The notes under the pieces were generated by a model. The model made no database searches. It was not told the DNA's origin and saw only the letters and a program-made list of their open reading frames with translations. Below, piece by piece: positions 934-8,895 of a stretch of DNA of 64,000 nt (positions are counted from its first letter, which is position 1; each line of letters opens with the position of its first letter). Position numbers and translations under genes: made by a program. The stretch comes from Utricularia gibba (Eukaryota > Plantae > Magnoliophyta). The DNA is taken from NCBI GenBank assembly GCA_002189035.1, contig CM007991.1, positions 1,860,001 through 1,924,000 of the forward strand, given 5' to 3'.

Positions 934-3900
934 ATGGCTGATGTCGCTCCTTCGGCGGATCGTATCCCTTTCTGCGTGTTTGTTGCCTTTTATGTTTGCT
1001 TTTGCCTAAGCTTTGACTCGTTTCATCTTTGTCGGCGTCCTTCGTGTGTGTTCCTTGGTGGTAGATCTAGCATCCTGAATGTGGTACCTGGGTGATGCCT
1101 GTATTTTTTCGTATTGACTACTTGCCTCTAGATCTTTTTAGCTAGTGTTGTAGGGGAGGTACGAGGGACGGCGTTTAGATTTGATTTGATGTTTACTGCT
1201 GCAAAAGACTGGCTTCAGCAACTGACGGATGCCAATATAGATGATACATCTATCATGTTTGTGTGCATGTGGCATTACTGGGGGCTGGAATTAAACGAGT
1301 TTGTACCGGGATTTGTGCTTCCTGAAACACATATTTGAGCTTTATAGACGCTTTGGTGCAATTTGTTGATTGCCTAAATAGTTTTCTTGTTTCTGAACGT
1401 CGTGTATGTTAAGGTATGTGTTTTCATAATGAATTCCTTAACTGAATGGTTTAGAAACTGTAGACATGCTACAGAAAATGTCATTAGATTCACGAGCTAA
1501 CCCAATAGACGTTCCTGAATCAACAAAGGTATGGTTTTTGGGTATGTCTGTTTAGCACTGGGATTATAGCCAGCGATTCTCGTGGCTGGGTTATTAAGTT
1601 TGACGATTCTCTTGCAGCTTTCAGTTGATTCCAACAATATTGCTAGTGGGGTTCGGTCAGATCGATCTACAACACCCCTCTTGCCTGATATAACGGATCC
1701 AACTGTGTGCTACCATCCGAATAGTTACACCCCACCTGGGTGCTACTACGGAGGTAAATTCATGTTTTTTTTAGGAGTGCTTTGCCTGTTTTCAAGAAGT
1801 TAGGCAGAACTGAATTAATCTCTGTGATGCAGGCTATGATGGTTCTGACTGGGATATGGTAAGATTCATGAGTCCTGATGGCGTGACTGCCTATGGGGAA
1901 GGTGCTCCTCTTGTGTACCACCCTGGGTATAGCTACAGTCATTATCCTCCATATTCACCTGGTGCTGCTTCTATGGTTCCGACACTCGCACATGATGGTC
2001 AGCTCTACGGAGCACAGCAATATCAGTACCCCAGCCCATACTTTCAGTCAATGGCTCCAACAAGTGGCACGTTAACCAATCCAGCAGCCCCACCAAAGGT
2101 GAGTTGGCTGCTTCTTCACCAAGTGATCAGGCTCCTTCGCCTGTGGATTCTGCTAATTCCAAATCTAATGGTATTGCCGCTGGCGGTGCTGCAAAGGCTA
2201 ATAACGGTAACCTAAATTCCAGACCAGGATATCCCAATTCGTCTTATAATCTGAATAGCGCTTATGGAAGAGCTTCCATCCCTGGAGGGATTCTTGCTTC
2301 CAGTTTTCAGGATCCAAGATATGCATTTGACGGATTGCACTCTCCAATTCCATGGCTGGAGAGCACATATTACTCAGATGGACAACCAAAGCTGGTCACT
2401 AGTTCGTCCATGACTACCTCCGTTCCAAATGTAAATAGCCTTCCTCCTCTTAGGAATCAAGGATTACGTGCTTCTGTGGTATGTTCAAAGGATGCCGCTT
2501 GTTGTTGTAGCTTTTATTTTGCAGGCTTATTTTTCTGGCGCGAGCTGTTCATAATTTTAGTTCCCGTTATATGTCGTGCATCGTTTTCATTTTAATCCTG
2601 GTGTGCATTGTGGAATTTGGTGTATTAATGGTTTTTTTTGGCATATTCAGGGCTTGCATCATCCTAGGCCTCTGGCTACCTTCAGCCCTGTTAGCGGATA
2701 TATGAATAGGATGTATCCTAACAGATTATATGGTCAGTATGGAAGCACTTACCGACCTGGTTATGGATCAAATGATTATGCTTCACGGACTAATGGACGT
2801 GGCTGGATGGCGATTGATGGAAAATACAAGCCCAAAGGAAGAGCGAACCCGCTCTATGTTTATGGAGGTGAGAGTATGGATGGCCTGAATGAATTGAACA
2901 GGGGTCCCAGAACCAAAAGCTCGAAGAATGCCAAGGGCATTACCCAAGTTGCTTTAGCTGTCAAAGGACAAAGCATAGCATCAGCTGGTGCTGTGGATAA
3001 TGAAAAATCAACAACAATTCCTGATCGAGAGCAATACAACCGACCAGATTTTCCTGAAGAATACGTTTCTGCAAAGTTTTTTGTTATCAAGTCATATAGC
3101 GAGGATGATATTCACAAGAGTATCAAGTATAACACATGGTCGAGCACTGAAAATGGAAACAAAAAGCTTGATGCTGCTTTCCAGGAAGCTCAACAGATTG
3201 ACGGAGGTTGCCCTGTTTTTCTTTTCTTTTCGGTGAGCATAACCACAAAAATTTTAACAAAAGGCGATTGTTATTTGTTGTTTATCGCTTAAACATAAGA
3301 GTTTTGTTTGTGTCCAGGTCAATACTAGCGGTCAGTTTGTTGGGGTTGCGGAGATGGTGGGTGCTGTTGATTTCAGCAAGAATGTAGAATACTGGCAGCA
3401 AGACAAGTGGAGTGGTTGCTTCCCCGTGAAATGGCATATCGTCAAGGATGTATCCAATAGTGTGTTGAAGCATATAATCCTTGAAAACAATGAGAACAAA
3501 CCTGTCACGAACAGTAGGGATACCCAAGAGGTAATACAAGCCATTTTATTTAATTATTCTGAGTTTTACGTTCGTGTGTTGCGGTGAATAATTCTTATCG
3601 TTGATCCTTTTTGTTAAACACAGGTGAAATTATATCAGGGGCTCAAGATTCTTAAGATATTCAAAGACCACCCTTGTAAGCAATGTGTTCTTGATGATTT
3701 TGACTTTTATGAGGAACGTCAGAAGAGAATTCAGGAAAAGAAAGGGAAACTACGACAGTTTCAAAAGCAGGTTCTAACGGCATTCCCATAATTTTCTTTG
3801 GCCTTCCTACCATGAACTTGCCATGCTAATGTGTCCATTGTGTAATTACTCCAGGCTCAAGTATGGGAAGGCAAACAAGCAGATGAGAACACTCCGGATA

Positions 3901-4088: not shown

Positions 4089-5030
4089 CTTCGGCATTGG
4101 TGGCGGCATGAGTGCTTGGTGGAATACCCAAGGCATGTGCCGCCCTTACTGTGCGTGCCTACGGGAATGATCCCAAGGCACAAAACCTGGTGCTGCATAA
4201 AAGAAATGTGAGCGTGAAGCTTCTCCAACCGCCCTGCGGGGTGCATTCTAGGCAGTGGAGCTTTGTTTTATTTTACCAGTAGTCTTTTTTGCTTTGTTCT
4301 TCAAGTCTTTAGTTCTCCTCGCTTCCCCTCCTGTGTTTTTGTCATCTTCTTGGTTGGCAGTCTCAGCATGTTACGATTTCCTTGTGTGGTTTCGTCATGG
4401 TTATGCGCTATCATCTGCTTCTGTTTCAAGTTTTTGAATTCCTGTAACGTTTCAGCTGGAAGCAGGGAGAAAGATCTCTGATAATATTTTCATTGCCCTC
4501 CTTTGCTGCTGCTGCTTCGCTTCTTCGTGCCTCAGAGAAGACAAAGCTGTCCAATTGTGAAGTGGAAAGTAGACTAGGGTGTCCACTCAGGAATTCATTA
4601 TTAAAATAAATTAATTTTGCTTGGAATTGATTATCAAGATGATTACAATCAGTCTATGAACTTATTTTGTATTCTGACAGTTGTAGCAATCTATCTGGCT
4701 CTAGTCAAAGTCCAATCAAATAGAGACATGCATCGAGAACAAGCCCAGACGCAAATCTAGATGACTAAGCGATGGAGCTCTCCAGGAGAAATGGAACTTT
4801 CTGGAAGTTCATCAGATTCCTTCCAGACAAAAAGCCAGGAGATGGCATCCACTAAATTACAACAAAATTCATCAGCATGCGTTACAGCTTATGGGCTCAC
4901 TTCGGACAAACAAACGAATGAATAATGGTAGCTGATGATACCAAACGACACTATACACAGGCAGCCAAAACAGGGTTGGTTTATCAGCAAATCACTTCGG
5001 ATCAGAAGAAAATGGAAGCTCTTGGACGCT

Positions 5031-8000
5031 TCAACTAATGTGTATCCGGGCAGGGAGGGAGAGTCCTCCTGCCTGCGCCTCCGTGGGGGAGCCATGGGGA
5101 TGATTTTCCAATTTCATCACCAGTTGGGTGCCTGGGGAAGACGACCAACTGCACTTTCTTCGCAGCTCTCCGATGCTCCAGTGGAGGACTTGTTCGATCC
5201 AAACCCGGAATGCCTTCCTTTCCTCGGCTAACCAACCAGCTGCAAGGATTTGACACATCACTTGTTGATCTATCTCTAGGCAGACGCCTCCATCTTCCTC
5301 CTGTAGTAGCCGATCGATCTCCCTCGCTACTTCGCGTGCAGCGGAATCGAAATTGAATGGGCTGAACACTACGTTCTCTTCCACATGCTCAAGCAGCTCT
5401 TGCAACCACGACAGGGATGATGATGACGACGACGATGAGGAGGATGGCTCGGAATCGTTTGGGCTGCCGCCACCGTCGCCCCCATCTGCACTGCCGGCTG
5501 CATCCATGTACACTTCAGTGTCAACCACTGGTATGTTTAAGTCGATGTGGGATCTGTGGAGCTCATTGTGCAGTAACATCCTCCTTTTGTCAGAAGAGCT
5601 TCTTTGACTACCACTTCCAGTTATCCAGACATTGGCTGCATAGTTCTTCCTTGACATGCTGTGGGCGGTACCTCCAACTGAAAGTTGCATCGGTAGATTC
5701 CTGGATTCGACAATTTTTTCCATGGGAAATTCAGCTGCAACTTCCCCGACAGCGCCCTGTTCTGCACTGGTCCTTACGATGCTAGATTCAAGCACAAAGA
5801 TGGTGCCGGGGATGTTGATGATCCTACCACAGGAGTCTCGAAATTTCCTGGTTTTGATTGCTAGGGATAAGCTTTCCTGAATCAATATATCCGCCTTGTC
5901 AACATTTTCAAGGAACACAACAGAGTTCGGGTGCTTTCTTAGCTCTTCAGCAATGCAATCAACTACTAGTTTCCTTCCTGGTGTCAGGCTCTGCAACTTG
6001 GAGTGGTAGCGATCAACAATAGAACCAGGTGACCAGATCGCATTCTCCATACTGAGGTTAAGACATACAAAATTCCCACTTGCGCCAAAAACAATCTGGG
6101 ACAACAGCACAGCTGTTTTAAGCTTTCCAACTTTATCAGGTCCTAGAAAAGTGAACCATAAGCAGCCTTTGCTTTCCTGCCTCCAACGTGACACAGATCG
6201 ACAGATGACCTGAATCGCATTTATTTGCCAGTAGACCTTCTCAGCCAGGGCATTCCACGGGCCTTCTAATTCTTTTCCAAACACCTGTTTGTCAAGATGA
6301 CCAGAAAGAAATGATGAATTGGTTACTTGGGCACTAACCCTCCCACCATCATCCTCTCTCAGTTTTCGCTTTCTTGAGGATTCATCAGGGAACCCATGAT
6401 TTGTTCCAAGGCTCAAGTCTGTGGCCACATGACTCGATGTGCTTTTCTGGGTGTCATTCAGATCCAAGTTCTGTGCCGCAATATGTTGATATTCCATAGG
6501 CCTGGACGGACTTTTGTCTGATACACTCCCCGCTCCTTCACAATCTTTAGAAAATGGAAACTTGTTCAAACAAGGAACAAGGGATCCAGACGGAGAATTT
6601 CCCCCAACAGATTTTTGAAACGCATGGAGCTTCCGGCAAATGTCGCCCCATTTTCTTCGGATCTCTGTGACCCTGGCATCCAATTCGCATTTCCCTTCTT
6701 TGATCTGCACTGAAAAGTCAGAGGCTATATTTATGATGCATCTTCGAGCTGAAAATCACAGTTTTCCAAGTTCTAAATGATTGGCAAACCTCTAAAGCGT
6801 TGGATGCTTTGCCTATTTGCAACCAGGAAGGGTTTTCTGGGTGTTTATCAGGAACAGTATCCATTGCTTCTCCCTTACGAACTGCAGAAACTTCTTGCTC
6901 GTGCCTCTCATTGCACCAGTCACATAGCTCCATAAGCGGAGCTGCGTTGGAGCGGGAGGTTCCAAGCTCAGACTGGGATGATGAAAAGAATCCCCCAAAC
7001 GGAACAAATGTCCTCATCAAGCTTCACGAATTATCACAACATGAGTAAGAACAATAAATGCATAAAGGGAGGGGAGGATAGATCATTGCTGCTACCCTTA
7101 CATTCAGGCGATACCATAATGAAGTTCGAAAAGCGTAACAGTTCACAGCAACAATGAAAAAAGGTTAAGGAAATGGATCGGAGACCTGGAGTTTAAACAC
7201 TTTCCTCCAATGGCGGAGGAGGTGATGGGAAGAAGATTCAAATCCCAGTCCGCTTCTAGAGAAGGAACTCGCTTTAGCAACTTCTTATAGACATCATCAC
7301 CTGCCAAAAATCCGATCAACCATAACCTCCGGCAAGAGTTCAACAAGGCTTCCTTCAGCGTAGTAACCACGCACGAAACAAGATCAGAAGATTCAGCATT
7401 CACAAGCGCGATTAGATCGCCACAATGTGCAATAGTTCCAGGCCCTTGGCGATTCTCCGTCCTTTCATCAAATTGCTTCAACTTCGATTCCATCTTCGCC
7501 TCACTTAGCCGCCCACTTAGGAACTCTGAAATTTCACGCTCCAGAGAGACCAAATTCAAGCCTTCAACTTCTTTAGGGAGGATTCCAGCCTCGCCCCTCT
7601 TCAAGGAATCGAGAAAACTGGCGTATGCATCATCCGCACACGCCCCAATTAGCAAAGGATTTCTCCGCGCTGGTTTCAAGAGGACTTCTGAAATTCTCTG
7701 TGTATTACCGCCAGCTTTTGCGTCACCATCTTCTAGTAGGAAGGGGAAGTTAGAGGTGAACTTACTCGGCCTGTTGTCGCTCAAACTGCGCAAGAACTGA
7801 GGCGGAGGCCGAGAAAGAGTGGACATGAATCGAGAAACAGGTGGAGGACTCATAACCGTGAACTTCATGTCTTGAGTCTGAAAACCCGCATCGCCGAAGA
7901 CACGGCTGACGATTGGGTCGTCTAAAATCGACATCACGAAATGCTTCAACTCGACTTTTACAGCAGAAATGGAAGGTGGGCTGTCGGGATTCGAATTCAG

Positions 8001-8372
8001 TTGCTGCTGATAAAGCAGAAACGTTTCCGGGTGCCGTCGCTGATTAGCTTGCGATCTCTTAATCGCAGCCATCAGCGAATTCGAGACCGGCGGTTCGTCT
8101 CCGGGGGTCTTCGACACCGAAACTCGGTCGAGAGCAACACCAACAGAGAGTTCCAGAGCCCGGAACTGAAGGCGCTGAGAGTAGGCGACGTTTCTGGAGC
8201 GCGTGCAGGCGTCTCGGAGCAGCGAAGAAGGCAGGGCAAGTAAAGCGGAGACAACGTGCAAGGAAGTCGTCTGCGCATGATTCCTCCGCCTGGCCACGGC
8301 GATTGCGTCGTCGAGGGCCGCGGCCGCATCCTTAGCCAAGCATTGGCGGGCAACATCCACCGGCGTGGGCAT
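5031..8372 (-). CDS. SMXL7: SMAX1-LIKE 6/7/8 (D53-like) ClpB-related strigolactone signalling repressor, about 1030 aa
   Basis: Exons 8372-7186, 7021-6790, 6704-5031, all with GT-AG boundaries. The clade-diagnostic N-terminus MPTPVDVARQCL...ARRRNHAQTTSLH is present, as are SILDDPIVSRVFGDAGF, LMRTFVPFGGFF, the Walker-like GPDKVGK and VVFLENVDKAD. I cannot resolve SMXL6 vs 7 vs 8. Confidence 0.93.
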
Positions 8373-8895
8373 ATTCGGGCAGACCCCAGATCCCCTACTC
8401 CTCCTCTTCCTCACAGAAACAAAACCCGGCTGCAGAAGCAATAAAGAATTGGGAGAATTGGTCCGCTCTCTCAATCTTTTAGGGACCTTTTGAGTGAAAG
8501 AGATTTTGCCCTTGTAGTTGGAGAAGGCTTACCAGAAAAACCCAAATCGCCAATAATTCCTTGCTTTCTGATAGCGAGAAAATATCACAACTCGGAAATG
8601 AAAAGAATCCAAATGAAATGAAAATGAAAAGAAAGGTGGCCGGCTCTGTGCGTGGGGCAGATAGTCTTTGGGAGCATATAAACAAACAACTGGTGGGCGT
8701 AAATTCGAATGCAACACCCCAAGTGGGCATATTCTCATGGCGGATCATGTTTTGTATCCCACTTTTGCTGTTGCTGGCCTTCCCTTCAATCGCCATCACA
8801 CAAAGCAATCATCCTCTGGGCTCTGTCTGTCACTGTTACCTCCTCCTTTTTTAAAAAGGACGGACGGACTACCGCCCCCTTCTTTCTCTCCCTTT

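Follow-up and report, generated by a model that had tools for sequence, protein, structure and literature searches.

The SMXL Gene of the Window and Its Transcripts

The window analyzed here, a 64,000-nucleotide (nt) stretch of Utricularia gibba contig CM007991.1 (GenBank assembly GCA_002189035.1; forward-strand positions 1,860,001 to 1,924,000), carries on its minus strand a gene for a D53/SMXL-type protein. A first-pass annotation of the same letters had noticed that this protein reads GRKL in place of RGKT, the tetrapeptide routinely taken as the D53/SMXL7 degron, and had proposed a possible hormone-insensitive repressor. From a list of open reading frames (ORFs) and the splice signals we modeled the gene as three exons, whose joined frame is free of internal stops (Table 1); the MPTPV...ARQCL N-terminus and the length of ~1030 amino acids (aa) given by the annotation are both correct. 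Contigs from four public runs, belonging to four studies, were placed on window positions 4900-8500. Those of the two RNA-like runs, X3 and X9 (two studies), skip both introns exactly; this confirms the model and shows that the gene yields spliced transcripts, and the claim of an intact ORF is borne out.

Table 1. Coordinates of the SMXL gene, its exons and introns, and its motifs in the window.
Feature	Position	Strand	Description
Whole coding sequence	8372..7186, 7021..6790, 6704..5031	-	3 exons; 3093 nt; 1030 codons/aa
Exon 1	7186..8372	-	Start codon (MPTPV...), N domain (double Clp-N type), D1; aa 1-395 plus two bases
Intron 1	7022..7185	-	164 nt, GT..AG; joint 7021>7186 in X3 and X9 contigs
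Exon 2	6790..7021	-	SLMRTFVPFGGFF..., part of M domain
Intron 2	6705..6789	-	85 nt, GT..AG; joint 6704>6790 in X3 and X9 contigs
Exon 3	5031..6704	-	Remaining M domain, D2a, EAR-like motif, D2b, stop codon
GPDKVGK	6123..6143	-	Degenerate Walker-A-like stretch of D2a; kept in all aligned relatives
GRKL	5967..5978	-	Position of the RGKT loop motif; aa 716-719; unchanged in four runs
IDLNI	5532..5546	-	EAR-type co-repressor docking motif between D2a and D2b; aa 860-864

At the motif itself, the minus-strand codons GGA AGG AAA CTA (5978..5967) read G-R-K-L, as annotated, in the context QSLTPGRKLVVDCIAEELRKHPNSVVFLENVDKADI. No variant letter was seen at 5967-5978 in any of the four runs, and none of them had codons for RGKT. 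The window protein does not have the canonical (F)RGKT loop of D2a, and MAFFT alignments contained zero gaps between the motif and the LENVDKA block; the difference from RGKT therefore arose by substitution, as the annotation had held, and not by an indel. A loop-shortening deletion of the d53 type is ruled out by the same absence of gaps in every alignment.

That the motif stems from faulty assembly or sequencing, or that the gene is decaying, has a negligible probability, and we rejected both possibilities. The de Bruijn contigs do break beside the motif, but the same letters occur in four runs from four studies, spliced transcripts come from two of these studies, all 1030 codons are open, and orthologs share the motif. 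In addition, 26 coding positions, all outside the motif, and six intron positions differ between the window and runs X8 and X9, so that the density of single-nucleotide polymorphisms in coding sequence (26 in 3090 nt) is about one third of that in introns (6 in 249 nt).

Contigs of all four runs break at 5943-5978, 6121-6158, and ~5661-5721. Shared unitigs had approximately double depth (X1, 21 vs. 9-11; X8, 78.7 vs. 39-45; X9, 137.5 vs. 85-96), which suggests a second copy of the gene, <95% identical, sharing the exact 36-mer coding GRKLVVDCIAEE. This putative copy is apparently found in the RNA-like runs too. Length differences of 3 bases between runs were seen within the coding sequence at 5416 and, at 8395 and 8398, in the 5' leader just upstream of the start codon; the one at 5416 (X8 and X9) lies after the EAR motif and before D2b, in an acidic, serine-rich tract with a D/G-rich part and a run of ~10 S.

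Placement of the Gene in the SMXL7 Clade

The full N-D1-M-D2a-EAR-D2b layout is present in the window protein, with an EAR motif that varies from LDLNL by I for L at both ends. Pfam AAA_2 in exon 3 scored 29 bits (cut-off 27) vs. 46-58 bits in two other Lamiales orthologs, and Clp_N at the N-terminus scored 20.3 bits, slightly below its cut-off of 20.7. The NBD_SMAX1 match was weak, and the Paulownia ortholog scores similarly in the same Pfam library. By sequence, the top match in the PDB was Arabidopsis SMAX1 in the MAX2-HTL7-SMAX1 complexes 9KKX, 9KLD, and 9KLV. Top matches in a search of representative sequences were all Lamiales proteins named SMAX1-LIKE 6/7-like (e.g., Buddleja, 45%; Olea, 43%; Primulina, 42%). 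Exon 3 alone as a word-search query returned only ~38% matches, full-length relatives exceeding the 1.75x length limit. Relatives were gathered with two full-length queries, a Primulina protein for the lineage called clade A here and an Ipomoea SMXL8-like protein for clade B, taking the best 120 of ~700 matches for each.

In an IQ-TREE phylogeny built from 82 full-length SMXL7/8 proteins, the window gene nested in Lamiales clade A. SH-aLRT support was 100 both for the set of 18 Lamiales rows and for core Lamiales, and 97 for a 12-row set. The clade A side also holds Cardamine SMXL6 and Petunia D53A and corresponds to the SMXL7 clade of Walker et al. (2019; PMC6728956), while the second core-eudicot clade contains proteins named SMAX1-LIKE 8 by NCBI. 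Paulownia is the closest relative, with 55% identity overall and 80% in the N domain. By its place in this tree, the window gene is a Lamiales ortholog of the SMXL7-clade co-repressors (Arabidopsis SMXL6/7, rice D53, petunia D53A), and its earlier assignment to the degradable SMXL6/7/8 (D53) group is supported. Membership of SMXL3/4/5 (the SMXL4 super-clade) is ruled out by the MPTPV...ARQCL N-terminus, by the SMXL6/7-like best matches, and by the tree; the latter was built without a true SMAX1 or SMXL3/4/5 outgroup, so that the exclusion of these proteins is carried by the N-terminus and the match ranking.

The Loop Motif across Lamiales and Other Orders

The first-pass annotation had treated the change at the motif as specific to one lineage, which the comparison with relatives did not support: judged from the alignments, GRKL is an inherited, order-wide state and no novelty of the bladderwort. 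All 18 Lamiales rows of clade A in the tree are non-RGKT, with an invariant R and with K in 15 of them. Across ~35 Lamiales sequences overall, GRK[M/L/T]-type loops were found in Oleaceae, Orobanchaceae, Pedaliaceae, Phrymaceae, Lamiaceae, and Gesneriaceae, and in every clade A sequence of the order the gap-free alignments place R one position later than in RGKT. The loops read FGRKM in Olea and Abeliophyllum; SGRKM in Paulownia, Penstemon, Phlomoides, Orobanche, Buddleja, Rehmannia, and Erythranthe tilingii; SGRKL in Erythranthe guttata; AGRKL and AGRKM in Sesamum; LGRKM and LGRKT in Striga; MGRKM in Castilleja; SGRKT in Andrographis; PGREL in Salvia; SERTT in Perilla; SERKM and SDRQM in Gesneriaceae; and PGRKL in the window protein. 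Among the orthologs named SMAX1-LIKE 6/7-like, xGRK[M/L/T] is shared by Paulownia fortunei (P0180), Olea europaea (P0161), Erythranthe guttata (P0195), Striga asiatica (P0199), and Sesamum alatum (P0181).

In the sister lamiid orders R comes first (LRGKT in Nicotiana, FRGKT in Ipomoea and Coffea, FRGMM in Lithospermum), and Solanales, Gentianales, and other eudicots mostly have [F/L]RGKT. Since GRK[M/L/T]-type loops occur in all 18 Lamiales orthologs, the state predates the radiation of the order. Oleaceae are an early branch of Lamiales; the most parsimonious history has a single origin of both changes, RG to GR and T to M/L, on the stem of the order and prior to the divergence of Oleaceae, with loop length unchanged.

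The exact tetrapeptide is also variable elsewhere. In a sample biased to top matches, 18 of the 51 SMXL7/8 rows from outside Lamiales deviate from RGKT, including RRKT in legumes, LRRKT in Petunia D53A, FRGKH in clade B of Solanaceae, FRGQT in Cucurbita, and SGRKA in Rumex (rows P0221, P0022, P0254, P0266, P0311-P0315, P0020, and P0065); the Rumex loop is an independent GR swap. Because these rows and every recovered Lamiales ortholog fail RGKT, the exact tetrapeptide is unreliable as a defining feature. Indeed, FRGKT has been described as only "broadly present" in SMXL7/8 (Walker et al., 2019; PMC6728956).

The other SMXL7/8 lineage of Lamiales, on the SMXL8 side (clade B), has a different loop. 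In core Lamiales, all 11 rows read MRG-T or MRC-T, in which the motif lysine is absent, and one further residue is lost after KKP (P0328, P0332, P0336, P0339, P0341, P0343, P0349, P0359, P0370, P0376, and P0391), while the two Oleaceae rows (P0329 and P0082) retain IRGKT. No core-Lamiales SMXL7/8 protein with a canonical RGKT was found among the best 120 of ~700 matches in either search, in which one could have been missed.

A Logan contig of SRR32856089 (L001, 307-3593) holds a Lamiaceae-like transcript of a clade A ortholog with the loop SERKT, nearest to SERTT of Perilla. Its coding sequence is split over two overlapping ORFs (555 and 618 aa), the result of a retained intron or an assembly frameshift.

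The Loop and Strigolactone-Dependent Degradation

Structural work showed that the RGKT loop replaces the pore loop of ClpB, that it sits in the composite MAX2-receptor-D2 interface, and that it contains no ubiquitination site; replacing RGKT with AGAA had no detectable effect in vitro, whereas deleting RGKT reduced the complex (PMC12639087). The annotation had reasoned that a protein without RGKT is not degraded. Its premise holds, in that the canonical RGKT is replaced, but the step from replacement to stability rests on deletion alleles, and AGAA was tolerated in vitro. GRKL-type loops also occur in the orthologs of plants that are not known to be strigolactone-blind, which goes part of the way toward a finding that the annotation itself had named as contrary to its proposal (GRKL in known degradable orthologs). 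That the lineage has uncoupled SMXL6/7/8 from strigolactone, as the annotation had suggested, does not follow from GRKL, the motif being order-wide.

Considering the sequence comparisons together, we favor the view that the window gene is an ordinary Lamiales SMXL7 ortholog whose product is probably still degradable. The protein would act as an EAR-dependent co-repressor, its D2a loop would still contribute to the surface on which SCF-MAX2 and ligand-bound D14 dock, and a strigolactone response would probably still destroy it. Retention of docking across the order is argued for by the invariant arginine and the usually conserved lysine, by the full conservation of the remaining D2a in the other Lamiales orthologs, and by the in vitro tolerance of the loop to substitution, given that the complex was disturbed when RGKT was deleted but not when it was substituted. 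The window protein also keeps the equivalents of two SMAX1 contact residues, L731 as L and R744 as K (alignment to chain D of PDB 9KKX), which argues in the same direction. Moreover, U. gibba retains one CCD7 and one CCD8 (Supplementary Data 3 of PMC6379432), which makes continued synthesis of the hormone in the bladderwort family probable.

Several observations weigh against this view. The authors of the AGAA experiment noted that in vitro assays may understate effects in planta (PMC12639087), and in predicted contacts R719 and K721 of SMXL7 face D167 of D14 and D610 of MAX2 (PMC13233607); a shift of the arginine by one position could have consequences in planta. Our literature search found no description of the GRKM form of Lamiales and no degradation test of a Lamiales SMXL7. 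In the window copy itself, six of the 31 conserved D2a columns are lost, vs. 13 of 341 pooled over 11 relatives (Fisher p = 0.0026), and D2a is 50% identical to that of Paulownia, vs. 60-69% in other core Lamiales. Finally, the ratio of non-synonymous to synonymous polymorphism (pN/pS) between runs was 0.49 (16 non-synonymous and 10 synonymous differences; one-sided binomial p = 0.06 vs. neutrality).

The points that concern the loop could also be read order-wide, i.e., the RG-to-GR swap may have left the whole SMXL7 clade of Lamiales poorly degradable or non-degradable, with signaling carried by the SMXL8-side clade, by SMAX1 via D14, or by compensation in MAX2/D14. The absence of the canonical motif from every Lamiales clade A row fits this scenario, as do the non-canonical, lysine-less loops of core-Lamiales clade B beside the IRGKT of Oleaceae and the lack of a canonical core-Lamiales protein among the matches retained in either search. 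Deletion of RGKT, moreover, nearly abolishes MAX2 binding in a yeast three-hybrid assay (PMC13233607). However, an invariant R, a nearly invariant K, and a D2a otherwise fully conserved in these proteins fit a loop under selection for docking, AGAA substitution was tolerated in vitro (PMC12639087), and a canonical copy could lie beyond the best 120 of ~700 matches. We therefore consider such an attenuation unlikely, and retention of docking in Lamiales SMXL7 proteins the better account of the loop.

Divergence of the Window Copy

Across the protein, the window copy retains 189 of the 204 columns that are conserved family-wide, and six of its 15 losses are those in D2a (E635N, E676Q, D689N, G759R, E801M, and K848R), an excess over the rest of the protein (p = 0.014). 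G759R adjoins the lysine equivalent to R744, and the L-to-I change at aa 864 of the EAR motif is also among the changed columns. The N domain, in contrast, keeps 83 of its 85 conserved columns. The other Lamiales orthologs keep 29-31 of the 31 D2a columns (30-31 in Paulownia, Primulina, Salvia, Striga, and Olea), vs. 25 in the window protein, and the terminal branch of the window gene, at 0.75 vs. a median of 0.2, is 3-4 times longer than theirs. The window copy is thus fast-evolving, with more changes at conserved D2a positions than any relative compared, and its sensitivity to the hormone may be altered; the signs of this lie in the D2a changes and not in the motif.

Such figures bring up an uncoupling peculiar to the bladderwort, in which relaxed or changed selection on D2a as the input domain, added to the inherited motif, would have produced a partly or wholly hormone-insensitive repressor; the idea of the annotation would then hold, but on other grounds. 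The contrast between D2a and the N domain, with both Fisher tests, speaks for it, as do the low AAA_2 score, the pN/pS ratio, and the branch length. Yet the long branch may be a genome-wide trait of the lineage, the comparison having been made without a control gene; plain identity shows similar divergence in M, D2b, and D2a, and the numbers are small. The reading frame, the EAR-like motif, and expression are kept, as are CCD7 and CCD8 in U. gibba. We regard the evidence for relaxed or changed selection on D2a in the bladderwort lineage as modest, and uncoupling itself as rather improbable. A broader combination is likewise doubtful, namely that both SMXL7/8 lineages of core Lamiales have a remodeled degron loop (GRK[M/L] in the SMXL7 clade, MRG-T on the SMXL8 side), with co-change in MAX2/D14 or weaker turnover, and that drift of D2a in the rootless bladderwort lineage then gave a partly hormone-insensitive branching repressor. 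An ordinary SMXL7 ortholog that is probably still degraded is the reading that we retain for the window protein.

Comparison with Known SMXL Proteins

Arabidopsis SMXL6/7, rice D53, and petunia D53A resemble the window protein in clade, domain order, MPTPV N-terminus, GPDKVGK, and an EAR-type motif, and all of them share the block VVD-x-IAEEL...VVFLENVDKAD after the loop. Compared with SMXL6/7 and D53, the window protein has GRKL instead of RGKT, IDLNI as its EAR motif, and a much more diverged D2a, and petunia D53A itself reads LRRKT. A partial precedent exists in poplar, where PtSMXL7a and PtSMXL7b, of the SMXL7/8 group ("clade II"), have atypical motifs with two residues replaced, which were described as possibly affecting signaling; PtSMXL7b nevertheless binds D14 in a GR24-dependent manner (PMC9945404). 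The poplar change is independent of that in Lamiales and restricted to a genus rather than order-wide; instead of swapping RG, it puts other residues in the place of GK (ST, and SM or MT, on which the paper contradicts itself).

The non-degradable SMXL3/9 and SMXL4/5 proteins are, like the window protein, without a canonical RGKT. However, they belong to the other super-clade, have a different N-terminus, and have lost the motif entirely (PMC6728956), whereas the window protein keeps R, K, and the length of the loop. The dominant alleles of rice d53 and the RGKT deletions of SMXL7 and SMAX1 affect the same loop, but they shorten it, and the window protein has no indel there.

For the window gene taken alone, the outcome is mostly deflationary: an inherited motif says little on hormone insensitivity in this plant, and the gene adds one more member to a known family, with a loop variant found throughout the order. 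More interesting is the pattern across the order: in Lamiales one SMXL7/8 lineage has a rearranged loop, and in core Lamiales the other lineage has a shortened one. Lamiales comprise ~24,000 species, including sesame, olive, the mints, and the parasites Striga and Orobanche. Their loops provide a natural test of which features are decisive, i.e., the position of the arginine, the lysine, or the length, and complement the cryo-electron microscopy work in which deletion, and not substitution, had an effect. They also advise caution in gene-family surveys that use the presence or absence of RGKT as a proxy for degradability.

Beside the SMXL gene, ORFs at window positions 2576-3590 on the plus strand encode a fragment of a YTH-domain (ECT-like m6A reader) protein. 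They lie tail-to-tail with the SMXL gene, ~1.5 kb apart, a spacing that suggests a compact genome.

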